Positions 1,728 through 63,962 of a DNA stretch of 64,000 nucleotides are shown piece after piece. The first letter of the stretch is position 1. Every line of letters begins with the position of its first letter. This stretch comes from Macrostomum hystrix. Its lineage: Eukaryota; Animalia; Platyhelminthes. The notes below the pieces were generated by a model. That model saw only the letters and a program-made list of their open reading frames with translations. It was not told the DNA's origin and ran no database searches. Position numbers and translations under genes: made by a program. The stretch is from assembly GCA_950097015.1 (NCBI GenBank), contig CATNEN010000034.1:4464001-4528000 (forward strand). The letters are read 5' to 3'.

Positions 1728-3058
1728 GTGTGTGCTCCAATATCTCAGATATTGAATATTGAATGCTGTGTGAGCTCCAATATCTAATGATGCGTGTGCT
1801 CCAATATCTAATGATGCGTGTGCTCCAATATCTAATGATGTGTGTGCTCCAATATCTCAGATATTGAATATTGAATGCTGTGTGAGCTCCAATATCTAAT
1901 GATGTGTGTGCTCCAATATCTAATGATGTGTGTGCTCCAATATCTAATGATGTGTGTGCTCCAATATCTAATGATGTGTGTGCTCCAATATCTAATGATG
2001 TGTGTGCTCCAATATCTAATGATGTGTGTGCTCCAATATCTAATGATGTGTGTGCTCCAATATCTAATGATGTGTGTGCTCCAATATCTAATGATGTGTG
2101 TGCTCCAATATCTAATGATGTGTGTGCTCCAATATCTAATGATGTGTGTGCTCCAATATCTAATGATGTGTGTGCTCCAATATCTAATGATGTGTGTGCT
2201 CCAATATCTAATGATGTGTGTGCTCCAATATCTAATGATGTGTGTGCTCCAATATCTAATGATGTGTGTGCTCCAATATCTAATGATGTGTGTGCTCCAA
2301 TATCTAATGATGTGTGTGCTCCAATATCTAATGATGTGTGTGCTCCAATATCTAATGATGTGTGTGCTCCAATATCTAATGATGTGTGTGCTCCAATATC
2401 TAATGATGTGTGTGCTCCAATATCTAATGATGTGTGTGCTCCAATATCTAATGATGTGTGTGCTCCAATATCTAATGATGTGTGTGCTCCAATATCTAAT
2501 GATCTGTGTGCTCCAATATCTAATGATGTGTGTGCTCCAATATCTAATGATGTGTGTGCTCCAATATCTAATGATCTGTGTGCTCCAATATCTAATGATG
2601 TGTGTGCTCCAATATCTAATGATGTGTGTGCTCCAATATCTAATGATGTGTGTGCTCCAATATCTAATGATGTGTGTGCTCCAATATCTAATGATGTGTG
2701 TGCTCCAATATCTAATGATGTGTGTGCTCCAATATCTAATGATGTGTGTGCTCCAATATCTAATGATGTGTGTGCTCCAATATCTAATGATGCGTGTGCT
2801 CCAATATCTAATGATGCGTGTGCTCCAATATCTAATGATGTGTGTGCTCCAATATCTAATGATGCGTGTGCTCCAATATCTAATGATGTGTGTGCTCCAA
2901 TATCTAATGATGCGTGTGCTCCAATATCTAATGATGCGTGTGCTCCAATATCTAATGATGTGTGTGCTCCAATATCTAATGATGTGTGTGCTCCAATATC
3001 TAATGATGCGTGTGCTCCAATATCTAATGATGTGTGTGCTCCAATATCTAATGATGCG
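1728..3058. repeat. 24-bp minisatellite (GTGTGTGCTCCAATATCTAATGAT)n, roughly 50 copies
   Basis: Directly visible tandem array. The long ORFs 1875-3071 and 1904-3088 are 8-aa periodic translations of it. Confidence 0.97.
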
Positions 3059-4558
3059 TACTTTGATTTAAAAAATGTTTTCCTTTAATCTGTCCGATCA
3101 TAAACGATCTATATTATTTTGGTTTAAAAAAAGAGTGTTTTAGCAATATCCTCGTCAATGTCAGCAAACCGCTGCAATTAGAGCTCTATTTTTGTACTAA
3201 ACTAAACCTAAATCCATGATAATCTGTTGCAACTGAAGCAATAGCCGATTTCCTGTTTGAAGATTAAACTTTAGAATAATTGGTTCCCAATGGAATCGGA
3301 ACTGAACGATTTCCGTTAAGAGAATGTTGGTGACTGCAAGAATTCCCGGCACAATGGAACAGGATGTAGCGATGCATCAGTCCCGCACTGCAATAGGAAC
3401 TTTCACATTCTGTGTCCTCGATTTCTAGCTTAATAACAAAGATTTGTACTCAAATTTGGCACGAATTGCCGAGAAAATTTTAATGCTTACTTGAATACGC
3501 ACTCATACGCACTGTTAGTAGTGTCACGTTTAGGCAAGGAAATCTACTGATTTTGTCCAAGCAATCTGTACACAAGATAGTGCAGTTGATAGGGCAGTTG
3601 ATAAAAATTCTAAACTAGAAAAAGGCCTTAAGTTTAGTTGGGATAACAAGCAAGCACATTATTTATGACTTTATAGTACTCAAACCAACTAGAATATACT
3701 CCTAAATTATGGTCACTAGCTTTAGTAGCACCAACAATCGACACGAAGGGTTAGAAAAAAGACAGACCTACAATGTAGGAAACTTGTAGGAATGTACCTT
3801 TGAACCTGTCGAGAATCTAAGAATCTAAGACCATCATTTTGCATAACTACGAGTATCTACTGATTTGCACATTTGTTGTATGTCGTAAGAAACTTTCAGA
3901 AGCAACGTGCCCAATGTACAAGTGCAGGAACGGCCTTTCCAAAAAATGAAAATACATTTTCCGTGTCTACGGAACAAATGCCATTAAAATAATTTCAAAC
4001 AAGAGCTTAGAATAATGTCTAGTACATGTTGCAATACAAATGCTTCATGAAACTCGCTGCAATCTAGAATGCTGTCATTCCTGTAGCTATTTTTAGACTG
4101 CGTGGACCAAGCTGGGGTGGGGGATAAGGACCCGATGCACATTCATGCCAGTTTAAAGCAATGTACACTCCCTGTACACAACTCCCAGGTGTGTTCCTTG
4201 CTTACAAGATTGCTTTACAATGGACCAATTTCATCTCAATTTCGTCATTCAGAGAGAGATCCCCATGCAGCGTTGCCATTGATGACCAAAGTTGAACAAC
4301 TCGTGAAGACAAACCAATGACCGACACGTTGCATTGCGGGGCGTGAATCATGCGATTGCACAACTTGAAGCAAAGACTCCCATTGTGCAGTGCAGTGCAT
4401 GGCAGAGCATAAATTGAAGAGACGGCAGTGCCATCCGAATTAAAAGCAGCCAAACTAGACTCAAACAAAGAGACTGAAGGCATCAGCGAATACGCGTGAA
4501 GTGGAAAATTCAAACCTCCCACAACTCAGATAATCTAAGACACCGCAAACGGAGCACA

Positions 4559-6319
4559 ATGGTTCGCGGACGAGGAGCTTTTCGAGGTCGAGGCGGACGC
4601 GGCGGCCGAGGACGCGGTGGCGGACGAGGCGGCGGTCGAGGCGGAGGCCGCGCTGCGGGCCGTCAGCAGCAGCCGGCGGAGGACGAGTGGGCCGTCGGGA
4701 AGGTGACGGATGCGGACGAGGCGCTGGACATTGCGGCAGACAGTAGCGCATTCTTCCTGGGCGTGACCAGCTTTGAGCAGCACACGCGAGCTCAGAGCAG
4801 CAACCGGACTCGATACGCTGCGGCCATCGCCGTGCTCACCAAGTCCGGAGTCGAGATCAACCAGAACGCCCGGGTTCGCGCCCTGGCGGCGGCCTGGGCC
4901 CGCGGCGATCCGGTCCTGGCCTCCGGACTGCTCAAGCTTCGAGGCAGCTTCGGAGTCGCCGAGGTTCTGAAGGCGGCCACCATGCTGGACTCCGGCCGGA
5001 AGATCCGCGAGTGGGAGAAGCGACTGGCCAAGGCGCAGAGCCAGCCAGGCGGAGCCAAGAAGAAGCTTGTCAGCAAAGTCAAGTACAACATTGACAACCT
5101 GTCGGCCATTCGGCCGGCTCAGGGCTCGGCCAGCGGCGCCTTCTGCCGACATGTGCAGCGCTGGGTGCGCAGCTTCTCTGCAGCCGAGCTCGAGTACTTT
5201 GCTCTGCACATGTCCAAGGACCCGTGGAAGAAGCTGGCCGACATTTGCCACCTGAACCCGACAACGGACTTCCCCGCAGCGCCCTGGTTCCTGCCGTTCT
5301 GCTTCGGCGCCGAGGCTCCGGACGGGACGCTGGCCAAGCAGTGCAGCGTCATCACTCCGGAGAACGTGAACGAGATCCTGGCAGATCGAGCGCTGCCCTT
5401 CTCCGAGATTCGCCGCTTCCTCGCCCACATGACCAACGAGACGAAGGCGCGGGTGGTGCGCAACGACGACCGAGTCGACCGCGGCATCTGGTGGTACGAG
5501 GACGTCAAGTGTTCCGAGGTCGATGCAGCCATCGAAGAGCGGCTGCGCAACGGCGAGCGAGTCACCCTCACCTACGGCAAGCTGATGGAGCGCCTGCTGC
5601 TCTTCTCCGGCATGTCGCCCGTGCCCAGCTTCTACCAGCTGCTCATTCCCGCCGCTGAGCAGAAGCTCCAGGAGACCTCTCTCAACCTGGATTCTCCCGT
5701 GGTGGTCATCGGCGACGCGTCCTCCTCCATGGGCGTGGCCATCAGGACCGCCACCATCATCTCCTCGCTGCTGTCTGCCATCATCAAGTGCGACCTCGTC
5801 TTTTTCAACACCAACTCCTGGCGACCCGAGGCCAGTCCCCGCACCATCGAGGAGGTGCTGAGTCTCGCCCGCAGCACCAGCGCCTCCGGCTGCACCGCCC
5901 ACGCCGCCGCTCTGCACCCCTACTACGAGCGCAAGGAGCTCGTCAAGACCTTCATCGTGGTCACCGACGAGGAGGAGAACACCGACTTCAAGGGCACCCG
6001 GTTCTTCCCGCTCTTCGAGCTCTATTGCCAGGAGGTGTTCAACGCCAAGCTCGTCTTCGTCTCCTTCCTCAGGCAGCAGCACGCCAAGGGCCAGATGGTG
6101 AGCGAGGCTGCGAGGCGAGGACTCAGCGTCCAGCAGTTTGTGCTCAACGGCAGCCGGCCCGACCTCAACAAGCTGGACAGCATCCTGGGCCGCCTGGGCG
6201 TCCAGTGCGACACCTTCGAGGACGAGGTGCGCAAGATGACTGACCGCATCAGCTCCGAGGGCCTCCACGAGGTTCTCGGCCAGCTGTTTAGCAGCGACTC
6301 CGCCTTCGACGAGCTGTGA
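4559..6319 (+). CDS. RGG-rich + TROVE-like + vWA (Ro60/TEP1-type) putative RNA-binding protein, copy A (586 aa, intronless)
   Basis: The ATG at 4559 starts a GC-rich ORF with an N-terminal RG/RGG tract. The C-terminal vWA fold has MIDAS residues DASSS, the T of SGCT and the D of VTDEEEN, the same layout as the Ro60 vWA (DVSASM...GGT...FTDNE). KKLADICHLNP and LPFSEIRR recall TEP1 TROVE motifs. Family assigned by eye, no database search. Confidence 0.75.
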   Translation: MVRGRGAFRGRGGRGGRGRGGGRGGGRGGGRAAGRQQQPAEDEWAVGKVTDADEALDIAADSSAFFLGVTSFEQHTRAQSSNRTRYAAAIAVLTKSGVEINQNARVRALAAAWARGDPVLASGLLKLRGSFGVAEVLKAATMLDSGRKIREWEKRLAKAQSQPGGAKKKLVSKVKYNIDNLSAIRPAQGSASGAFCRHVQRWVRSFSAAELEYFALHMSKDPWKKLADICHLNPTTDFPAAPWFLPFCFGAEAPDGTLAKQCSVITPENVNEILADRALPFSEIRRFLAHMTNETKARVVRNDDRVDRGIWWYEDVKCSEVDAAIEERLRNGERVTLTYGKLMERLLLFSGMSPVPSFYQLLIPAAEQKLQETSLNLDSPVVVIGDASSSMGVAIRTATIISSLLSAIIKCDLVFFNTNSWRPEASPRTIEEVLSLARSTSASGCTAHAAALHPYYERKELVKTFIVVTDEEENTDFKGTRFFPLFELYCQEVFNAKLVFVSFLRQQHAKGQMVSEAARRGLSVQQFVLNGSRPDLNKLDSILGRLGVQCDTFEDEVRKMTDRISSEGLHEVLGQLFSSDSAFDEL

Positions 6320-6775
6320 CTTCAGCACCGGTCTGAGCTGGCTGGAATTGCTGCTGCATCTACTTGAATGCAGTCTTTTAGCACAATTCTGTGTACAGAA
6401 AGGAAACTGTGGTGTTTTTTATGTTCAATTCAAAAGATTTATTCGTTTTTTGTATAGTGATTTTCTATCAGAATGCTATCTTTTTTGCTTTCCTCTAATC
6501 AGAATCCCCCATGCGAATGGTTATTATACGTATTCCACGTTGTACTCAAGGACCACTAGTAGTTAGTATTAGTCCTCCTTACTACTGTTTAGAAGTCCTT
6601 GTTTGTATTTTACCGGAGATATTTTACTTGCATAGTTACACTCCTGTGTACTTTCGCGTAACGAAGACCAAGTTAAGCTGAGCTTCAGGTGTGAAATTGT
6701 ACACAACAAATGCTTGAGCAGAAGAGAAGATTAAAGAACAGAGCAAAACAAGACAGAACAGAACAGAATAGAGCA

Positions 6776-9070
6776 TGTTGAGTTTCACAAGCTCAAACTC
6801 AAGATATGTTAGGGATAGACGAATAGACGTCTTAGACGAATACACAAAGCTTCGTTCGTCATTTTTGTCCGGTTCCGTGGCCGTGCTGTATGACGCTAGT
6901 CACTTGCCAAAACACTCTCACCCTTCATCGAAATCTCGCCATTCTTGGGAATTGTGCCAGGTTGCCTGGTACTCGATTTGCCGATCCAGTCCAGTGCGGA
7001 TTTGACGTTTAAACAGCCACTCGGCCGGTGCGACCTTGGTTGCCGCATGCGGTGTCGCCCTGTACCTCAGCAGGAACTCGGCCAGCACCTGGTCCAGGCA
7101 TTTTTCACCGTTGTAGTTCGTGTCACTCTTTACATTTGTTCATCACACTTACTTTAAGAAAGTCTTGTAATTTACTGGATGCACACAGGGACACGAGCTG
7201 CAGGAGTATCTCAGGGCATGCAAATTTTTTTCGCAAATCTTTAACAGTAGAAAAAGCGCGCCATTAAAGACGTTGAGAGATATTCAACGATTCCGCCGGG
7301 GTGTCTGGTGCCAAAAACTACCAATATAGGCATAGTTTTTCTGCTCACAAAATTTTATCATGTAGCAGGATCGGCTACCATTGTTGACTATTTTGGATTA
7401 ATTTGATTGTAAACTTTTCTTTTTGAACCAATACGGATTCGCCATCGATGCTTATACAGAGCAATGATACTTGTCCATGTCACCAAGGTCTCCGTTTAGA
7501 ATCGCTGAATATCTCGACGATGATCACGTCGGACGGCTTTGAAAGTTTGTTCACCATACAGGGCGAAACACTTTGGTCCAAATGGTGGACTTTGACGACA
7601 ATCAATCATTCGGTTTTGGATTAATGATATCCTAAAGTCTATGAGCAATATTTGCCAGGGTTCTTATCGTCGCCCCGAAGACAATCGATAGAGCTTCCTT
7701 GTCAATTTGAGCCTAGTTCGTCTCGCTGATAGTCAAGGTTCTGCTGGCGTAGCAAATCTGGTGCCCTATTGCATCAGGAAAAGTGCGATTAATGACTGCT
7801 CCCAGTGCAGAGGAGCTATCGCAGGACAACACAGGACCCGACAAATGTTTTTTTTGGGTCGTAGTAAGTTAGACCCAGTGGTGATGTCAGTCTTTTCTGT
7901 ACAGCACGAAAAGATTGCTCAAATTCTGACGATCAATTAAATTTAAAGTCCTTACACAGGAGCTGGTTTAATGGGTGGAACACTGAGGTCAGGTCAGCCA
8001 GGAACTTGGAGTCATATTGGACCACCTTGATAAGTGATGGACCTCGGAGACATTAGTCAGATGTGGGGCATCCAGAATTGCCTTGACCTTGTCTCAAGAT
8101 TTATGCAGCCTATCTTTATCGATAACGTGTCCCGATTTCATAAATGAGCATTTTGCCGGGTTTAAAGTCAATCCATGCACACGGAATCGCTGGAGGACTT
8201 GTCTTAAGCTTTTCAGGGTGTAACTGCTTATCGGCGCTCTTGATTAGTGCATCATCTCTGTAGCAGACAGTGCGGTGATGCATATTCGCACATTAGGGTT
8301 CGAGTCTTGCACCTGTGGCACTTCGCTTAACTTTGATCAGCTATTTCTAACGCTTGTGCCATGACAATTTGAAAAGCGCTTCGAAAGTGCAATCAGCTTC
8401 TTTTTCCTGTAGCAACCGCTTCTGGATCTGGGCGTCCGCCAGTCCACATTTACACCACACTTCCAGGCACGAAAGCAGACACAGAAATTGCGATACAGCA
8501 GAAATCGAGCATAAGGAGGGCACTGTCTATGGCACAGAAAGGATATATTTGGCACCACGCTGCGCGAGAGAGACAAAGCTGGGCAACACTCGGGTGCCAG
8601 CCGAAATACAACTCAGCTCAAGGCGGCGGGGTGGGTGTCTGGGGTGGGTGTTTACACCCAATCAGCGAGCGCCGATTGGACGCAACAGATCGGTCCCGCA
8701 GCATGTCACCTAAGTAGCTATCAAACTTCTCAAATAAGCCAGAAGGTCTGCCCTGCTTTCTCCGTCGCGCTGAGTAATCCTGAGTAATCCATTGGCCTGT
8801 TCGAATCGTTCAATGTACGGCTGCTAATCCTCTGGATTTGCCGTGTCGAATGCTTCGACGGCTTTCTAAATCCTCGTCACCAATGTTGAGTTTCAGGAAC
8901 TCAAACATCTAAATATAAGTTAGGGAAAATACTTCCATAATAGCTCGCCCAAAGCGAAGCCAGCGCGGTCCTTATATTTGTAACCGATTTGCCATGTGAT
9001 TATATAAAATAGACTGGTATTGCTAACACAAGTGCCACAGACAGATAATACACAGCAGAACAGAACAAAA
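6776..9070 (-). mobile_element. Decayed, internally deleted Ty3/Gypsy LTR retrotransposon
   Basis: On the minus strand: PBS-like TGGTGACGAGGA at 8882-8871 after an LTR-like end (...CTCAACA), gag remnants (VEAFDTANPED*QPYIERFEQ; LGDMLRDR; CGLADAQIQKRLLQE), RT/RNase H remnants (CYRDDALI at ~8265-8242; VLQRFRVHGLTL; GHVIDKD..DKVKAILDAP; ICYASRTL; QIDKEALSIVFG) and an integrase C-terminus (LAEFLLRYRATPHAATKVAPAEWLFKRQIRT at ~7090-7000). Many stops and frameshifts. TGTTGAGTTTCA occurs at both 6776 and 8884. The right boundary is approximate. Confidence 0.85.
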
Positions 9071-9073
9071 CAG

Positions 9074-9697
9074 ATGAAGGATGGATGATGGATTATAGAT
9101 GATGGATGATGGAGGATGGACGATGGATATAATGCAGGATGGATGAAGGATGATGGATCATGGATCATGGATAATGCAGGATGGATGAAGGATTATGGAT
9201 GATGATTGATGAATAATGCAGGATGGATAAAGGATGATGGATGACTGATGATGGATGATGGATGATGGATAATGCAGGATGGATGAAGGATGATGGATGA
9301 TAATTGATGGATAATGCAGGATGGATGAAGGATGATGGATGATGGATGATGGATAATGCAGGATGGATGAAGGATGATGGATGATGGATGATGGATAATG
9401 CAGGATGGATGAAGGATGATGGATGATGGATGATGGATAATGCAGGATGGATGAAGGATGATGGATGATAATTGATGGATAATGCAGGATGGATGAAGGA
9501 TGATGAATGATGGATCATGGATAATGCAGGGTGGATGAAGGATGATGGATGATAATTGATGGATAATGCTGGATGGATGATGGATGATGGATGATAATTG
9601 ATGAATAATGCTGGATGGATGATTGATGATGGATGGTCTATGATGGGTGATTTATGATTGATGATGGATGATGGATGATGGATGATGGATGATGGAT
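9074..9697. repeat. Compound (GATG/GGAT)-rich microsatellite/minisatellite
   Basis: Directly visible GATGGATGAT/ATAATGCAGGATGGATGAAG repeats. Confidence 0.93.
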
Positions 9698-10264
9698 ATG
9701 GAGGCGGTACTCTGGATGCTTTTATAATCCAAGAGTCTGGAGTTCAAATTTAAGCCATTGAGCAACTATTTCTGTGCTTAAACAAAACGCTAAGATCTCC
9801 ATCAGGCTTGATTCCTAATTAGGCTGTACTTGTTGCTCTACTGAATTAGCATTTGCATATCAATCAGCAATCAGTAACCGTCAGTCATGCAAGACCGATG
9901 ACAGGTGTCAGGTGTCAATGACTCATTCATGCTTCAGAAGTATCAGATATTTAAGTTACTACAGATAATAGACAAATTTAAAATTGACTGACATATATTT
10001 CTATTCATATATATATATTTTTTAGTAAAACAGAATCGTGTTATGAGATACAAGAGACCGAAATAAGCTCCTGTAAAGGCGAAATCACTGCAGACTACAA
10101 AAATGAAGAAACATTTCTAGGCAAGAATATGTCAATCCTGAAGATAACTATAAAAATGATTCAGAAAAAAGGCTACAATTGAGACTGCTTCGTGAAGTAG
10201 AAAATTATCATGCGCGCAGCAACCGAATAGAAGTTTTAAAGAAACACTGAGACCGGTGCTGAAG

Positions 10265-11995
10265 TCACAGCTCGTCGAAGGCGGAGTCGCTGCTAAACAG
10301 CTGGCCGAGAACCTCGTGGAGGCCCTCGGAGCTGATGCGGTCAGTCATCTTGCGCACCTCGTCCTCGAAGGTGTCGCACTGGACGCCCAGGCGGCCCAGG
10401 ATGCTGTCCAGCTTGTTGAGGTCGGGCCGGCTGCCGTTGAGCACAAACTGCTGGACGCTGAGTCCTCGCCTCGCAGCCTCGCTCACCATCTGGCCCTTGG
10501 CGTGCTGCTGCCTGAGGAAGGAGACGAAGACGAGCTTGGCGTTGAACACCTCCTGGCAATAGAGCTCGAAGAGCGGGAAGAACCGGGTGCCCTTGAAGTC
10601 GGTGTTCTCCTCCTCGTCGGTGACCACGATGAAGGTCTTGACGAGCTCCTTGCGCTCGTAGTAGGGGTGCAGAGCGGCGGCGTGGGCGGTGCAGCCGGAG
10701 GCGCTGGTGCTGCGGGCGAGACTCAGCACCTCCTCGATGGTGCGGGGACTGGCCTCGGGTCGCCAGGAGTTGGTGTTGAAAAAGACGAGGTCGCACTTGA
10801 TGATGGCAGACAGCAGCGAGGAGATGATGGTGGCGGTCCTGATGGCCACGCCCATGGAGGAGGACGCGTCGCCGATGACCACCACGGGAGACTCCAGGTT
10901 GAGAGAGGTCTCCTGGAGCTTCTGCTCAGCGGCGGGAATGAGCAGCTGGTAGAAGCTGGGCACGGGCGACATGCCGGAGAAGAGCAGCAGGCGCTCCATC
11001 AGCTTGCCGTAGGTGAGGGTGACTCGCTCGCCGTTGCGCAGCCGCTCTTCGATGGCTGCATCGACCTCGGAACACTTGACGTCCTCGTACCACCAGATGC
11101 CGCGGTCGACTCGGTCGTCGTTGCGCACCACCCGCGCCTTCGTCTCGTTGGTCATGTGGGCGAGGAAGCGGCGAATCTCGGAGAAGGGCAGCGCTCGATC
11201 TGCCAGGATCTCGTTCACGTTCTCCGGAGTGATGACGCTGCACTGCTTGGCCAGCGTCCCGTCCGGAGCCTCGGCGCCGAAGCAGAACGGCAGGAACCAG
11301 GGCGCTGCGGGGAAGTCCGTTGTCGGGTTCAGGTGGCAAATGTCGGCCAGCTTCTTCCACGGGTCCTTGGACATGTGCAGAGCAAAGTACTCGAGCTCGG
11401 CTGCAGAGAAGCTGCGCACCCAGCGCTGCACATGTCGGCAGAAGGCGCCGCTGGCCGAGCCCTGAGCCGGCCGAATGGCCGACAGGTTGTCAATGTTGTA
11501 CTTGACTTTGCTGACAAGCTTCTTCTTGGCTCCGCCTGGCTGGCTCTGCGCCTTGGCCAGTCGCTTCTCCCACTCGCGGATCTTCCGGCCGGAGTCCAGC
11601 ATGGTGGCCGCCTTCAGAACCTCGGCGACTCCGAAGCTGCCTCGAAGCTTGAGCAGTCCGGAGGCCAGGGCCGGATCGCCGCGGGCCCAGGCCGCCGCCA
11701 GGGCGCGAACCCGGGCGTTCTGGTTGATCTCGACTCCGGACTTGGTGAGCACGGCGATGGCCGCAGCGTATCGAGTCCGGTTGCTGCTCTGAGCTCGCGT
11801 GTGCTGCTCAAAGCTGGTCACGCCCAGGAAGAATGCGCTACTGTCTGCCGCAATGTCCAGCGCCTCGTCCGCATCCGTCACCTTCCCGACGGCCCACTCG
11901 TCCTCCGCCGGCTGCTGCTGACGGCCCGCAGCGCGGCCTCCGCCTCGACCGCCGCGTCCGCCTCGACCTCGAAAAGCTCCTCGTCCGCGAACCAT
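10265..11995 (-). CDS. RGG-rich + TROVE-like + vWA protein, copy B (576 aa, intronless), inverted near-identical duplicate of 4559-6319
   Basis: ATG at 11995, TGA at 10265. Identical to copy A except a 30-nt in-frame deletion in the RGG tract and two missense changes (DPVL>DPAL, NLDS>NLES). Confidence 0.75.
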   Translation of the reverse strand: MVRGRGAFRGRGGRGGRGGGRAAGRQQQPAEDEWAVGKVTDADEALDIAADSSAFFLGVTSFEQHTRAQSSNRTRYAAAIAVLTKSGVEINQNARVRALAAAWARGDPALASGLLKLRGSFGVAEVLKAATMLDSGRKIREWEKRLAKAQSQPGGAKKKLVSKVKYNIDNLSAIRPAQGSASGAFCRHVQRWVRSFSAAELEYFALHMSKDPWKKLADICHLNPTTDFPAAPWFLPFCFGAEAPDGTLAKQCSVITPENVNEILADRALPFSEIRRFLAHMTNETKARVVRNDDRVDRGIWWYEDVKCSEVDAAIEERLRNGERVTLTYGKLMERLLLFSGMSPVPSFYQLLIPAAEQKLQETSLNLESPVVVIGDASSSMGVAIRTATIISSLLSAIIKCDLVFFNTNSWRPEASPRTIEEVLSLARSTSASGCTAHAAALHPYYERKELVKTFIVVTDEEENTDFKGTRFFPLFELYCQEVFNAKLVFVSFLRQQHAKGQMVSEAARRGLSVQQFVLNGSRPDLNKLDSILGRLGVQCDTFEDEVRKMTDRISSEGLHEVLGQLFSSDSAFDEL

Positions 11996-12733
11996 TGTGC
12001 TCCGTTTGCTCTCTGGTCTGTGAGCCAATTGTAATTAAAGCTTAGATGAGTTTCCCTGTTAGTTTTAGAGCAGCTTTTCATGGGATTGCACTAGTCAAAG
12101 ACGATTTTGCAATGTTGTAAACTTCTTGCAACATCTTGTGCAATAACTGAAATTGTACTCACAAGTGCACAATAGATTTTTCACTTCATTCCATGTTCTA
12201 CTCCTGCTTTCTCACCCTTTCTTGCCCTGTACATATAGATGGAAACAAGAGAAGACGCGCTGTTCACAAATATATTCGTCCCTCAATGCAGTATTTTTTG
12301 GTTGCCATGCAGCGAGCGCACACGTAACTGTACTGCTAAGTTGTGGCCCACTTTCTGTCCCTGTTTCATTGATCGGCCCTTTTGTCCGAGGAAAACCTGA
12401 GCTGTCGCTGGCGATAGAATTGCTTAAAAAGTTTCGCTTAAAAGTTCGTTAATTAGGTTGACAGTATAGAAAGACGTCTTTTAAAGTTAGTTCAAGGCAA
12501 AAAGTTTTGCGAAAAGTTATGATGGACCTCCGTGGTCTCTCCCCAGGGGGGAATAGTGTGGTCTTTCTACCGTTAAAACAGAAGTGACTGACAACGTTCT
12601 CGGCATCTACTGTTAATGTCCTCTTTAATGTCGGTACTGTAATGTAATGTAATGTAATGTAAGTACTTGTAATATAGGTAAAATATGAAAAACGGTCGAG
12701 AAAATGTTCTTTTGGTATTTATCGTGCTTAATT

Positions 12734-13192
12734 TCATTTACAACTCAGAGTAGCATCGCCTGAAGAGGCGACTGAGCCGTGGTCGCTGACAGCTTGTGGG
12801 GCGGTGTCATCCTCATCAGCGCTGGCTTCAGCGGCCTCAAATGCCGCAATTATTCGCCTGGCCCTGGCCACATCTTGTCTCTTGGTAGCCAGAACCCTGG
12901 CCTCTCTGCCGCTCACGAGCAGCTGCACCTGTTTCGCCGCCTCAGCTGATTCGCTTTTTCGCACAATGGACGCTCCCACTAGAAATATGAGCGTCAGAGC
13001 GTACAGCAGCATCATGGCCATTACGTAACCACTGGCGCCAAGGGATTGCTCCGGAGATGACGGCGGGGTCGACGTCGTGTCCAACTGAGCGACCAGAAAA
13101 CGCAGCGCCTGTTGGACGAGCTTCCGTTCTCGGTCCAACTGCCGGATCTGATAGCCCTCCAGGAGGCTGGTGACGTTTCTAACCGGAGGCAT
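12734..13192 (-). CDS. Small single-pass membrane protein (152 aa), KCNE/MiRP-like topology
   Basis: AAAAATG start context and an upstream acceptor-like TTCAG. N-terminal sequon N-V-T, no signal peptide, one TM (YVMAMMLLYALTLIFLVGASIV) followed by RK. Family assignment is weak and by eye. Confidence 0.55.
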   Translation of the reverse strand: MPPVRNVTSLLEGYQIRQLDRERKLVQQALRFLVAQLDTTSTPPSSPEQSLGASGYVMAMMLLYALTLIFLVGASIVRKSESAEAAKQVQLLVSGREARVLATKRQDVARARRIIAAFEAAEASADEDDTAPQAVSDHGSVASSGDATLSCK

Positions 13193-14878
13193 TTTTTGGC
13201 TCCTGAAGTCGTCTGGAAAAGGAATGTGAAATTTGGAATGCTAATCATTTGGTGACACTTGAGTCGCATCCAGCGAGGAGGCAATTTTGCCCGTTCCGTT
13301 GACTGCTGCGCACTGAGTACGCATGCACAGTCACACAGATGTGTACATCTGTCGTAGCTTTCTTATCGTCACTCACTCCCCAATGGCAATGGGCCATTAA
13401 GTATTGAGTGTTTATGAAATTCGATTATGACTCTAAGACAAAAGACTTTGGGTGAGCCATAGAAATCTAGATTTAGGATAAACGAAGGTCAAAAATGGTC
13501 ATTTACTTTTAGTTACGGCCATAGACAATACTATCACTGCGATCGTTGTTGGGTTTTTTCCGCTGAATTCAACTTGTGTCCCGAGGCCATAGACATCTAC
13601 ACGGTCATAAATGAGCTCTGAAACGATGCTAGTTGTACATCTGTACATATGGTAGTATTCTGCTGTTCCATAGACATGGGAGCTAAAAAAGAGAACTTTT
13701 TTCGAGCAGTTTTAAATACCATGGTGTCCTTGCCTCTTGTAGTTGATCTTCAACATAGAATAGACCATCTGTTTATCCAAAGCGAGCGTTTAACAATTAG
13801 CGGTAACTAATTGGCCAAACGTTAATTAAACTCGTTATTCGCTACTTACCAAACAAGCTTGTTAGTCGATTTGCTAGTTTGGAAGAAGCCAAAATTGTCT
13901 TGTTAAAAAACTACCAGATACCTTGAATGCCTATAGTTTATAAATTCAAAATTTATATTGAGATTTTGCGATACCTTATTTCATTTTTATTTTTTATTTA
14001 AACAGTCACATTTGCAGTGAATTGTTTCAATTAATTTTTTCAATTCCAGTCCGTATGCCTCTTCAAATCCTTCCAGCACTTGGCGAGAAAAAAATTAATC
14101 AACAAAGAGTGAGCAAGAATGATTTTTTTTACCGAAACAGCAAATGAAATATGCCGGCCTGAAGGTTTTGAAAATTGTTTCTTGTATGCATGGAAATTTT
14201 CTCGTTTTTTGGCGTGCTACATACAGAAAATTAGTAAAAATTACTTTAATCAACATACGTACGGAATGATGCAAGGTGTAAGGAGATATTTAAAAAAGAC
14301 AAGCAAGATGCTTAACACACTACTGCGGGTAAGAATGTGAGTAGAGTTGTACGAGTCATTATATATACAAGTAAAATAATAAATATGTTTGACAATTAAA
14401 AAGCACTTTGGGGAATACACCCCAAAAACACGTTGCTTAGCTTAGCAACCAGTAAAATATTTCCAACATAGAATATTGGACACAAATTATAAAAAATTAC
14501 AATTTATATAGGATTTATTCATACGAACAGAGGAATGTATGAAAAAATCACAAAGCTATAAATTGTTAACTCAGACAACGCAAAACGATAGCTTCGCAAT
14601 TTGGAATTAGAGAAGAGTAAAAATAAACACACTAAGGATTAAATGTACATTCATAAGTGTACATCGCTTCTATTTTTAGATAGCAAAGGCGGGTGATTCA
14701 TCCTATGGTTTTCTACCCCAACTAGACAGCCACCCCAATTTATAGCCAGTCTATTTTTAGACATTCGATTTTACGAAACCAATATAGATCAAGTTAGAGC
14801 AAATTTTCGACCATAAGCTCTTCTGAAAATGTATAAACTATTATAGATGCTAATTTAATTATGTTTAATTTCGAAAGC

Positions 14879-17800
14879 CTAAATCCAGCGCAGAAGAGCG
14901 GCAGCCAGGCAGACAGACAGCAGGCTAATCAGGGCACTAGGCCTGCTAACGATGGCAGACAAAGTCTCGAGGCTATTACCGAAGCACAGCGGACCCTGGC
15001 ACACCTCCTCATTAGCCAGTGTTAGAACAGCGGCATCTACGCCATATTTGTTCTTAGCCACGCAGGTGTAATTGCCCAGATGAATAGATCGCAGCGGTTT
15101 AATGCGGAGCGAATAGAAGAACTCGTACACCTGCGTGCCGGCCGCGCCCTGGCTGCGAAGGCGCTCAACAGTGTACGGGAATTCGTTCTTGATCACCTGA
15201 CTGTCTGGCAGCGGCTGGTCCGGCTTTGGCACCACCGTGCCTTTGTAGAAGGTCACTTCCGGATCCGGGAAGCCGGTTGAGATGCACTCGAGAGTCATTT
15301 CAAAATTTCTGTCGGGGGCCTAAAATGGGCGGATGTGATTTTTTAATCGAAAAGATACAATGTAATTTTCTTGATTTTATTAAATCAATTTGTTTTAAAA
15401 TGGACCAGACCCTTGTAATAAAATCAAATAATTAAGGATTAGGGTTGTGTAGTCTCCGTCATAGCCCAATGATCCTGAGACACTGAGGGAGTTGGTCATA
15501 GCCCAATGACACTGAGGGAGTTGGTCATAGCCCAATGACACTGAGGAGTTGGTCATAGCCCAATGACACTGAGGGAGTTGGTCATAGCCCAATGACACTG
15601 AGGAGTTGGTCATAGCCCAATGACACTGAGGGAGTTGGTCATAGCCCAATGACACTGGGGGAGTTGGTCAAAGCCCAATGACACTGAGGAGTTGGTCATA
15701 GCCCAATGACACTGAGGGAGTTGGTCATAGCCCAATGACAATGAGGGAGTTGGTCAAAGCCCAATGACACTGAGGGAGTTGGTCAAAGCCCAATGACACT
15801 GAGGGAGTTGGTCATAGCCCAATGACACTGAGGGAGTTGGTCATAGCCCAATGACACTGAGGGAGTTGGTCATAGCCCAATGACAATGAGGGAGTTGGTC
15901 AAAGCCCAATGACACTGAGGGAGTTGGTCATAGCCCAATGACACTGAGGGAGTTGGTCATAGCCCAATGACACTGAGGGAGTTGGTCAAAGCCCAATGAC
16001 ACTGAGGAGTTGGTCATAGCCCAATGACACTGAGGGAGTTGGTCATAGCCCAATGACACTGAGGGAGTTGGTCATAGCCTAATGACACTGAGGGAGTTGG
16101 TCATAGCCCAATGACACTGAGGGAGGTGGTCATAGCCCAATGACACTGAGGGAGTTGGTCATAGCCCAATGACACTGAGGGAGTTGGTCAAAGCCCAATG
16201 ACAATGAGGGAGTTGGTCATAGCCCAATGACAATGAGGGAGTTGGTCAAAGCCCAATGACACTGAGGGAGTTGGTCATAGCCCAATGACACTGAGGGAGT
16301 TGGTCATAGCCCAATGACACTGAGGGAGGTGGTCATAGCCCAATGACACTGAGGGAGTTGGTCATAGCCCAATGACAATGAGGGAGTTGGTCATAGCCCA
16401 ATGACACTGAGGGAGTTGGTCATAGCCCAATGACACTGAGGGAGTTGGTCATAGCCCAAAGACACTGAGGGAGTTGGTCATAGCCCAATGACACTGAGGG
16501 AGTTGGTCATAGCCCAATGACACTGAGGGAGTTGGTCATAGCCCAATGACACTGAGGGAGTTGGTCATAGCCCAAAGACACTGAGGGAGTTGGTCATAGC
16601 CCAATGACACTGAGGGAGTTGGTCAAAGCCCAATGACACTGAGGGAGTTGGTCATAGCCCAAAGACACTGAGGGAGTTGGTCATATAGCCCAATGACACT
16701 GAGGGAGGTGGTCATAGCCCAATGACAGTGAGGGAGTTGGTCATATAGCCCAATGACACTGAGGGAGTTGGTCATAGCCCAATGACACTGAGGAGTTGGT
16801 CATATAGCCCAATGACACTGAGGGAGGTGGTCATAGCCCAATGACACTGAGGGAGTTGGTCATAGCCCAATGACACTGAGGGAGTTGGTCATAGCCCAAT
16901 GACACTGAGGGAGGTGGTCATAGCCCAATGACACTGAGGGAGTTGGTCATAGCCCAATGACACTGAGGGAGTTGGTCATAGCCCAATGACACTGAGGGAG
17001 TTGGTCATAGCCCAATGACCAAGATCATTGATATAAAAGATTCTTTGCTACTTTAGTATAGCTACCTGAATGATACTAAAGAGCTTTAGTAGAGCTTAAA
17101 CAGCCGGCAATGGCCCAAATATCCGCTCACCTGCAAGTACAGGTTGTGCAACCGGGCACCGCGAATGCTAGGCGCATAGTTGACATCGATGCGAACATCA
17201 TGCTTAGCACCGTATCCAACATTATTATTGGCAAAGCAGCGGTAAACTCCACGATCGTATCTAGTGACATTCACGAGCGTCACTTCGCTCTGGTAAACGC
17301 GCTGCGGCCGACCCGGAATATTCAAAGGCTGGCCGTTGGCTCGAATCCAGCTGATGTGGGCTGGCGGCTCCGAGGTGGCACTGCATCTCAAGGTGACGTT
17401 GGAACCCTCCTCCACAACCTTGGATGAAGTTGGCCAAATATATTTTAGATTAATAGAAAATGAATGAATGGCGAATCCAAATTGGTTCATCATGAAATAG
17501 TCAAAAATGAAAGCCTGGTTAGATGATGAAGTTTTGTGAGCAGAAAAAATATGCCTATATTGGTGGTTTTTGCCACCAAGACACACTGGCTAGAATCGTT
17601 GAATATCTCGACTTTTCCAAGGAGATTGAGAATCGAACCCTTGACCTTTCTGTATTCCTGTAGCCTAGCCTAGCTTAGCAATGAAACATACAATATAAAA
17701 ACTAAAAAAATGAATAACCTGATTGTTGGTGACCTCAGCCGGGTTAATAAATGGCTCTCTGGGCACAATGAGAATAGCTACAACCTCTGGCGAGTCAGCT

Positions 17801-19616
17801 GGCGAACCGGGCACATTGATGCGGCATTTATAGTTGGCTGCGTCCAGATTGGTCAGGCGGCGAATGATGAGGGTGAATGTGAGCAAATCCGTGTAGCCCA
17901 TGTCAGGAATGAACACTGTGCGGCCTGGCCTGCTGCGCACCTCATACTTGACCATGTCACCCTGCAGTATGGGATTCTGTTCCGTGATCTTTGTGCCAGC
18001 GCTGATGGCCTTGTCACTCTGTCCCGGAATCAGCCTGTACCATTGCACACGCTCGGGCGGATTGTCAAACAAAGCCACAGTGCAGTTTAGTGTGGCCGTA
18101 CTGTCTATGGGCCGAACCTCGGTGACAATGTTCTCAACAATGGCCGGCCTAATGCTGACAACTGTGGAATGTGTTTAAAAGGCTGGATTTTAAGTTCCTT
18201 CAACCAAAGAAGTTTTGATGGTTTCAGTATGCTCAGCACAATAAGTAGTTAATTCTATAATCTTACTGGTATACCTCAGGATTTGAGTTCATATACATAT
18301 TGTTACACACTATATTATTACAGCAAGATATACAAACTCATGGCAATTTACCTTAGCTAATTACTAAGCTAATTAACTTTCAAATAATTAAAGAACAATT
18401 GTAAGAATACATCAAATCGTTAATAATCAAGGGCTTTGATACAAAAATAAAGATATATACCTTGTATGTTAAACTTCACTTAGTTAAATAAACCATTACA
18501 AAGTGTGACTCTTGGCATATGGAACCCTTTGTAGCTTAGTGACAAAAATATACAGAATAAGTAATATTAGTAGAAATATCTAAAATGCAGAATTAGTATC
18601 ATATATATTATGTATCAAATATATTTCTTGACAAAGCAAACATGGCCTATTTAGATGCAAAATTTGTGCTTATTATTAGCTATTATTTATTATTATTATT
18701 ATTAAGCTAGAATGATGCTAATGCTGGTAGCAACCCACTTGACAGCTATGTGAACTGAAGCATAGCAGATTTAAGTGTCTTTTTAAGGAAGAAAAATCGT
18801 TCCAGTGTAGTTGGACCACCAACATTTAAATAGGGAATCTGATGCTCAAACCACTTGGCTAAAACACCCTTAATCTCAAACAGAGACATAGATGGAAACT
18901 AATGACTATATTATTGTTCTTTTTTGTTAAATATAATACTCATTTCAAAGCTAAATGACCATTTGCAAGTTTTTGTAGTTAATATACTGTTATAGCACAA
19001 TCATTCCAAAAAGCTATTAAAGAGCTTAACCATTAATAAAAGACAAATGCTTTTAGGAAACAAATGTATTGCTATATAATGCTACAGTTTTTCAGATCCC
19101 ATATCTTTCATTATGTGGGTATTATTATTACTAATATATATCACTTTTATAATGTGACATATACTAATTCTTAAATATCTCTTCACTTTATATTATTATA
19201 ATTTGTTTATATCGATTTTAAATGGCCAAACCCCTATCCCATAGTATGTAACCCATAGCAAGTAACCCATCATAGACACAAACCCAGTAGTAGAATTTCC
19301 TGAATTTACATACTTGTTTTATGAAAAGGCTGGATATTTAGAAAATGTGCAACATGGTAAAGCCTTGATGAAAAAAACAAAAAACAAAAAAAATTAAACA
19401 TACAAAATTTATTTTATACAATATCAATAACCTAAAACTAGATTAGCATGTCGACATGTTTTAAGTATTAGAGCACCAACAGTAGCTAAACTAAAAGCCA
19501 AGCTTAGGACAAAATATAAATGTTTCATGCAACTAAGAAATATAAAACTGCTTACCTTGTGGGAAAAAATATATTAAGGAAATTAGGGCCAGAAAAAATA
19601 TCGCTTTGACTGCCAT
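14879..19616 (-). CDS. GPI-anchored three-Ig-domain cell adhesion protein (lachesin/IgLON/DIP-like), 4 exons, 410 aa
   Basis: Exons 19616-19556 (signal peptide MAVKAIFFLALISLIYFFPQ, donor GTAAGC), 18161-17719 (Ig1), 17418-17131 (Ig2, ...DRGVYRCFANNNVG) and 15319-14879 (Ig3, ...HLGNYTCVAKNKYG, then a hydrophobic GPI-type tail). All junctions are GT-AG with matching phases; total 1233 nt. Confidence 0.88.
15470..17018. repeat. 29-bp minisatellite (GGTCATAGCCCAATGACACTGAGGGAGTT)n filling the last intron of the Ig gene
   Basis: Directly visible tandem array, roughly 50 copies. Confidence 0.96.
17520..17660 (-). mobile_element. tRNA-derived SINE-like repeat (family with a GTCGAGATATTCAACGATTCT...TGGTGGCAAAAACCACCA body)
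   Basis: B-box-like GGGTTCGATTC precedes a body that is also present at ~7272-7360 (+) and ~62197-62262 (+). Confidence 0.6.

Positions 19617-23711: not shown

Positions 23712-63962
<40,251 letters not shown>

Follow-up and report, generated by a model that had tools for sequence, protein, structure and literature searches.

The closest described counterparts of the locus reported here are the palindromic Amy and Hsp70 gene pairs of Drosophila, which stand as documented precedents for gene conversion (PMC3924832). Amy-p and Amy-d (Hickey et al. 1991; Shibata & Yamazaki 1995, both via PMC3924832) are two linked palindromic paralogs a few kilobases (kb) apart, and Hsp70Aa/Ab and Hsp70Ba/Bb (Bettencourt & Feder 2002, via the same source) are intronless inverted pairs kept near-identical. 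We consider a pair of similar layout in the flatworm Macrostomum hystrix, located in a 64,000-nt stretch of its genome (hereafter the window; C34:4464001-4528000): two intronless, near-identical genes that encode a protein of predicted Ro60-like fold with an RGG-rich tail, and that face each other as reverse complements. The M. hystrix pair differs from Amy in being convergent, in belonging to another gene family and a flatworm host, and in the unusually tight boundaries of its identity (14 and 15-18 nt beyond the open reading frame, or ORF); in addition, conversion at Amy was proven by multi-species comparison together with shared polymorphism, whereas the M. hystrix pair is known from one genome.

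An inverted gene pair with identity bounded by the reading frame

Structurally, the locus is an inverted pair with exactly two copies and sharp boundaries, bearing none of the hallmarks of a retrocopy or a transposon. A repeat search returned inverted arms at 4613-6337 and 10247-11971 (1725 nt, 99% identity), plus a second match joining 4545-4622 to 11932-12009; gapped alignment resolves these into a single block in which 4545-6337 (+) is the reverse complement of 12009-10247 (-). The two genes are oriented convergently, tail to tail, and identity across the 1763 aligned nt is 99.8%, synonymous sites counted. The main elements are as follows.

4545 to 6337, plus strand: arm A, the near-identity block, 1793 nt
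4559 to 6319, plus strand: gene copy A, an intronless ORF of 586 amino acids (aa)
4599 to 4628, plus strand: 30-nt segment found in copy A alone, bordered by two direct GCGGCGG repeats (4599-4605 and 4629-4635)
6338 to 10246, no strand: spacer between the convergent genes, 3909 nt; the parts adjoining the arms are unique in the genome
10247 to 12009, minus strand: arm B, the reverse complement of arm A, 1763 nt
10265 to 11995, minus strand: gene copy B, an intronless ORF of 576 aa, with 10 fewer residues in the RGG region and A119 and E378 instead of V and D

Identity begins 14 nt upstream of the ATG (that of copy A is at 4559) and is perfect to 15 nt past the TGA, or to 18 nt if one mismatch is allowed. 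Immediately beyond the block, identity in 50-nt windows of a forced alignment falls from 1.00 to 0.4-0.6, which is the noise level. Within it, the full list of differences comprises one 30-nt indel, two missense substitutions (T4914/C11670, giving V119 in copy A and A in copy B; T5692/G10892, giving D378 in copy A and E in copy B), and one substitution 16 nt 3' of the stop codon (G6335/C10249). The indel is of slippage type and lies in an RGG-coding, microsatellite-like stretch. Gapped alignment of the two coding sequences (CDS) contains no synonymous difference. The original prediction, made from the letters alone, had described reverse-complementary arms whose boundaries lie 14 nt ahead of the ATG and 15 nt past the TGA, two missense changes, a 30-nt RGG deletion at GCGGCGG microhomologies and an essentially complete lack of synonymous differences, and the repeat search and alignments agree with it on each of these features.

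Searches of the whole genome (220,453,370 bases in 42 contigs) at both the DNA and the protein level place exactly two copies of the gene in it, both in this window; the one further DNA match covers 60 nt of the RGG-coding stretch on another contig. None of the sequences next to the four arm ends recurs elsewhere in the genome, and we saw no A-runs or A-tails, direct repeats or terminal inverted repeats at the arm junctions. Capture by a transposon was ruled out on the grounds that the immediate flanks are unique and that the repeat search revealed no terminal repeats.

We also weighed an RNA-mediated origin, in which one copy would have been retrocopied from the other's mRNA, or conversion would have used a cDNA as its template, so that the boundaries would mirror those of a mature and possibly trans-spliced mRNA. 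Both copies are intronless, in a genome that averages 5 introns per gene and in which about 20% of the genes receive a spliced leader by trans-splicing (PMC10468722), and each ATG has an AG dinucleotide 19-22 nt before it. We nevertheless consider such an origin highly improbable: no poly(A) tract, spliced-leader remnant or target-site duplication was found at the junctions, and identity stops 15-18 nt past the stop codon, yet no canonical poly(A) signal is close by (AATAAA does not occur within 400 nt downstream of either stop, where there are only weaker variant hexamers). A processed retrocopy is ruled out, to the extent that sequence allows, by this lack of poly(A), target-site duplication and nearby canonical signal. 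The upstream AGs also deviate from the published acceptor motif [T/C]TNCAG, which was reported for M. lignano; given that mismatch, a trans-splice acceptor as the 5' boundary was set aside as speculation.

That the assembly misrepresents the locus, either because there is truly one copy or because two diverged copies were homogenised by mis-mapped reads during polishing, seems to us scarcely credible. The M. hystrix assembly (Wiberg et al. 2023; PMC10468722) was built from an inbred line using PacBio reads and canu, purged of haplotigs and polished with both long and short reads, and multi-mapping reads can blur paralogs. However, the two copies lie 3.9 kb apart, deep in a multi-megabase contig and between different unique flanks, and their copy-specific differences are preserved; a fold-back would have duplicated the flanks as well, polishing is unable to make a sharp ORF-bounded block of identity, and the Merqury quality value is 42.8 (PMC10468722).

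Origin of the coding-limited identity

In our view the best explanation of these features, and a probable one, is ectopic gene conversion that acts between the two linked, inverted paralogs and only within the coding block. A break in one copy would be repaired from the other, 3.9 kb away, with strand invasion and heteroduplex formation reaching only as far as the two loci remain alike. In the long run, the coding block, being under selective constraint, and a few adjacent bases would be all that stays similar enough for conversion, and the promoters, untranslated regions and spacer would drift and gain transposon insertions. Because conversion runs only where the partners are alike, and the constrained coding block alone stays alike, identity bounded by the ORF would be the expected outcome. 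A weaker observation, the position of the differences, is consistent with such a process: two of the four are found no more than 85 nt from a block edge (p ~0.05), a placement to be expected of conversion tracts that seldom extend that far. Since the copies differ by only three substitutions and one slippage indel, the last conversion of nearly the whole block was recent; that conversion has recurred is what we infer from comparison within a single genome.

Ordinary segmental duplication is disfavoured, as both of its random breaks would have to lie no more than 14-18 nt from the ORF. The same difficulty faces a more specific alternative, namely that a 1.8-kb segment holding the ORF alone was recently duplicated at the DNA level (by template switching or another replication-based route) and placed in inverted orientation 3.9 kb away, so that near-identity simply reflects youth. 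The very low divergence, the presence of only two copies in the genome and the flank comparisons described below, none of which gives robust homology by shuffles, blastn or tblastn, all speak for it. Against it, chance would have to place each breakpoint no farther than 14-18 nt from an ORF end, the duplicate would have started without a promoter of its own, neither microhomology nor a target-site duplication is seen at the junctions, and a weak shared upstream block sits outside the identical segment. We know of no mechanism that duplicates an ORF segment alone, and overall we judge this origin unlikely.

Any similarity retained by the flanks would bear on both readings. The flanks of the two copies are mutually unalignable. 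We compared the 5' and 3' flanks by local alignment at six lengths (40-600 nt) under three scoring schemes, using mono- and dinucleotide shuffles, and obtained p values of 0.03-0.9 depending on length and scoring; the 3' signal mostly disappears once shuffling preserves base composition. Measured instead against real non-repetitive sequence from the window, the flanks give p 0.015-0.6 overall, with the lower values at 150 nt (0.02 for the 5' flank, 0.03-0.04 for the 3' flank) and 0.1-0.6 at other lengths. Pieces of flank taken outward and inward found no matches by blastn (word size 7) or tblastn. The most suggestive similarity is confined to a pair of short upstream blocks.

4427 to 4450, plus strand: upstream block of copy A, 109-132 nt before its ATG; 23-24 nt, with about 19 bases matching copy B
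12070 to 12092, minus strand: upstream block of copy B, 75-97 nt before its ATG

The composite pattern of these blocks occurs nowhere else in the 220-Mb genome, and the shared block has p 0.02-0.06; it may be a faint remnant of homology or a cis-element common to both genes.

These comparisons divide what had been proposed for the pair. The original prediction read it as old paralogs homogenised by conversion within the pair, and offered faint similarity in the flanks as the sign of age; conversion stands as the best available explanation, and the faint similarity is not established by flank alignment, not being robustly above chance by shuffles, by the window null, by blastn or by tblastn. 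Since flank homology does not carry the pair's age, that it is an old paralog pair is something we infer. Several observations count against the conversion reading, or limit it. The flanks show no robust residual homology that would demonstrate an ancient duplication reaching into them; the best database match of the protein is 51% identical, and the comparison covers one Macrostomum genome; and both of the two CDS substitutions are missense, a number too small for any dN/dS inference. The G+C content at third codon positions (GC3), 0.85, is likewise not diagnostic of biased gene conversion, actin and Hsp70 genes in this genome having 0.84-0.91.

For this last reason, namely that the actin and Hsp70 genes are equally high, we do not take GC3 as evidence of biased gene conversion. 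By gene, GC3 is 0.85 for the RGG Ro60-like pair, 0.5-0.77 for its neighbours in the window and 0.66 for canonical Ro60, and the high value may owe no less to expression-linked codon bias than to GC-biased conversion. The long antisense ORFs are a by-product of the GC3 of 0.85.

Our search of the literature on gene conversion in Macrostomum found nothing relevant. Further comparisons come from the genome itself. M. hystrix has its own inverted Hsp70 pair, at C33:3867893-3869704 (-) and 3871449-3873260 (+), whose members are divergent, intronless and 1.7 kb apart, and are 99.6% identical over 2.8 kb, a tract that includes ~350 nt 5' and ~500 nt 3' of the ORF. The promoters of that pair are therefore co-homogenised, whereas identity in the Ro60-like pair ends at the ORF. 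Two more Hsp70 copies, on C33 at 4.23 and 4.64 Mb, are ~98% (98.2%) identical, with identity stopping at the stop codon. An inverted actin pair, at C1:24078231-24079226 (-) and 24102486-24103481 (+), is separated by 23 kb and 99.0% identical over 1.5 kb. Such bounded blocks of high identity among Hsp70 and actin genes fit with conversion, as a weaker observation.

A further actin similarity was noted on separate contigs: the loci at C10:159137-160117 and C41:507236-508216 are 99.6% identical over most of 4 kb and 97.7% identical over the last 0.44 kb, and could represent a segmental duplication or a residual haplotig.

The encoded Ro60-like protein

The protein of copy A is laid out as follows.

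Residues 1 to 53: RGG/RG-rich, disordered N-terminal tail
Residues ~60 to 372: helical TROVE-like domain
Residues ~380 to 550: vWA domain with the metal-ion-dependent adhesion site (MIDAS) motif D386-x-S388-x-S390

At the sequence level, assignment to a described family fails. Searches of Pfam, NCBIfam and PHROGs gave nothing significant, the Pfam TROVE model (PF05731) has no match in the protein by hmmscan at E<=1, and PDB searches with the single sequence and with a 28-sequence profile returned RGG low-complexity matches only; a weak match to phrog_850 ('RNA-binding protein', E 0.06) covers residues 382-502. A word search nonetheless recovered 213 homologues, the best of them 45-51% identical over ~90% of the length, from brittle stars, sea urchins, gastropods, bivalves, amphioxus, hemichordates, nemerteans, annelids and bdelloid rotifers, as well as from metagenome contigs. 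All are annotated as 'uncharacterized', a few bearing UniRef names of TROVE- or VWFA-domain-containing proteins. In an alignment of 28 homologues, the N-terminal RG/RGG tail is conserved and the residues of the MIDAS-type motif (D386, S388, S390, T464, T469 and D470) are invariant. At position 378 the family consensus is E, so that copy B has the consensus residue and copy A has D.

Structure prediction points to a more specific affinity. An AlphaFold2 model built from the 28-homologue alignment has a mean predicted local distance difference test score of 83 and a predicted template modelling score of 0.73, with residues 1-53 disordered, 60-372 all-helical and 380-550 forming an alpha/beta domain. 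Foldseek against the PDB places Ro60, Rsr or TROVE structures in all of the top 11 ranks (1yvp, 2nvo, 9nen, 9kop and 9l5y among them; E 4e-9 to 1e-6 over ~510-550 columns), followed by isolated vWA domains. VIA-align gives Z 15.1-16.5 to the Ro60 entries over 408-430 residues (root-mean-square deviation 4.6-7.9 Å), and Z ~13.8 over ~170 residues to vWA-only entries. The predicted fold and the motif therefore support a Ro60-like protein that lies outside the sequence family. Like Ro60 and Rsr, it would have a fold of ~415 residues spanning the helical and vWA domains and keeps the MIDAS residues; unlike them, it shares only 9-15% sequence identity, lacks a Pfam TROVE match and has the RGG/RG N-terminal tail as a conserved feature of its own family. 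The RGG-TROVE-vWA label first given to the genes thus holds for the fold (by Foldseek, VIA-align and MIDAS) and not for Pfam sequence membership. We found no paper that names the TROVE domain together with RGG.

Searching the genome with PF05731 identified two other loci only, one on C33 and one on C38, neither of them the RGG Ro60-like pair. These loci, C33:3754775-3757652 and C38:33569430-33570648, are canonical Ro60- or TEP1-type genes; as they are distinct from the pair, TROVE-fold genes number at least three in this flatworm. Separately, the abalone Haliotis rufescens carries two paralogs of the RGG Ro60-like family (P0022 and P0057) on one chromosome-scale contig with near-consecutive LOC numbers. 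On account of this pair, linked duplicates of the gene may recur in other phyla.

Spacer, surroundings and wider meaning

The spacer and the region just upstream of copy B contain the following features.

6984 to 8132, minus strand: heavily decayed Ty3/Gypsy-type pol remnant, with an RNase H region and an integrase C-terminal region, many stops and 30-58% aa identity to an intact family
7277 to 7620, no strand: interspersed repeat of ~345 nt, inside the span of the pol remnant, with at least 40 genome copies at 75-80% identity
9080 to 9702, no strand: minisatellite with a 14-nt sub-unit and 42- and 126-nt periods, present at other loci too
12737 to 13192, minus strand: small ORF of 152 aa with no Pfam match, on the strand of copy B, ending ~740 nt upstream of its ATG and outside the repeat

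The query that revealed the pol remnant was an intact ORF, present in multiple copies at other places in the genome, that carries RT_RNaseH, Integrase_H2C2 and rve, a Ty3/Gypsy-type set. Its matches in the spacer are collinear on the minus strand (8132-7674, 30% aa identity, E 1e-10; 7097-6984, 58% aa identity, E 2e-8), in keeping with the decayed Gypsy element that had been predicted there. The 152-aa ORF is a possible upstream neighbour of copy B and falls within the 1-kb criterion used for operons in M. lignano. At most, its presence on the same strand near copy B hints that control of the two copies might differ, as in the original prediction, by which one protein would come under two regulatory programs.

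The convergent orientation and near-perfect arms invite one further idea, raised in outline by the original prediction, which could be added to any account of the pair's origin: read-through of the spacer would produce a ~1.75-kb hairpin RNA, feeding an endogenous small interfering RNA (endo-siRNA) pathway that acts on the gene itself. That no canonical AATAAA occurs in the 400 nt downstream of either stop codon would favour such read-through. We hold the idea to be improbable, as the putative transcript would have to cross 3.9 kb containing variant poly(A) hexamers, and gene conversion accounts for the identity without a role for RNA. Drosophila loci that produce endo-siRNAs from hairpin RNAs (hpRNAs) are alike in having a long inverted repeat with a spacer 'loop'. 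The arms of those hpRNAs are non-coding copies of a target gene and are transcribed as one unit, whereas in M. hystrix each arm carries an intact ORF with a 5' region of its own, and a joint transcript is putative. Similarly improbable is an extended proposal by which the locus would encode both a Ro60-like RNA-surveillance protein and, through a hairpin with a transposon-bearing loop, endo-siRNAs that regulate it, or by which the ORF-precise boundaries would stem from conversion that used mature mRNA or cDNA, in place of DNA, as its template.

Several other features of the window were observed in passing. About 1.5 kb upstream of copy A, a 24-nt minisatellite at 1755-3056 (54.6 copies, 96% match) yields spurious 400-aa ORFs in several frames. 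Beside copy B, three immunoglobulin-domain exons (Ig_3, I-set and ig) at 14882-18174 (-) apparently belong to one Ig-superfamily adhesion-type gene, and a ~128-nt interspersed element at 13244-13371 resembles a short interspersed nuclear element (SINE) or a miniature inverted-repeat transposable element (MITE), with 554 first-look candidates in the genome, 40 of which were scored at 75-79% identity. Farther away, a 1013-aa open frame at 51271-54309 (+) with DUF1759, aspartyl protease and reverse transcriptase matches is a BEL/Pao-type retroelement, bordered by long strand-skewed tandem repeats at 49.8-50.8 kb and 54.3-55.8 kb. At 25200-34300 and 58900-61200, the window has several kb of tandem repeats that are strongly GC-skewed, protein-like and open in many frames.

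The Ro60-like pair offers a tidy flatworm example of concerted evolution limited to a coding region, a process already known; its boundaries of 14 and 15-18 nt are, to our knowledge, among the tightest of such cases. Alongside the Hsp70 and actin pairs, it suggests that inverted paralogs commonly undergo ectopic conversion in the M. hystrix genome, which would bear on the dating of paralogs and on orthology calls in Macrostomum. Perhaps the more useful lead is the protein itself, which points to an uncharacterised Ro60-fold family with an RGG tail, distinct from canonical Ro60 and conserved in echinoderms, molluscs, amphioxus, hemichordates, annelids and rotifers.

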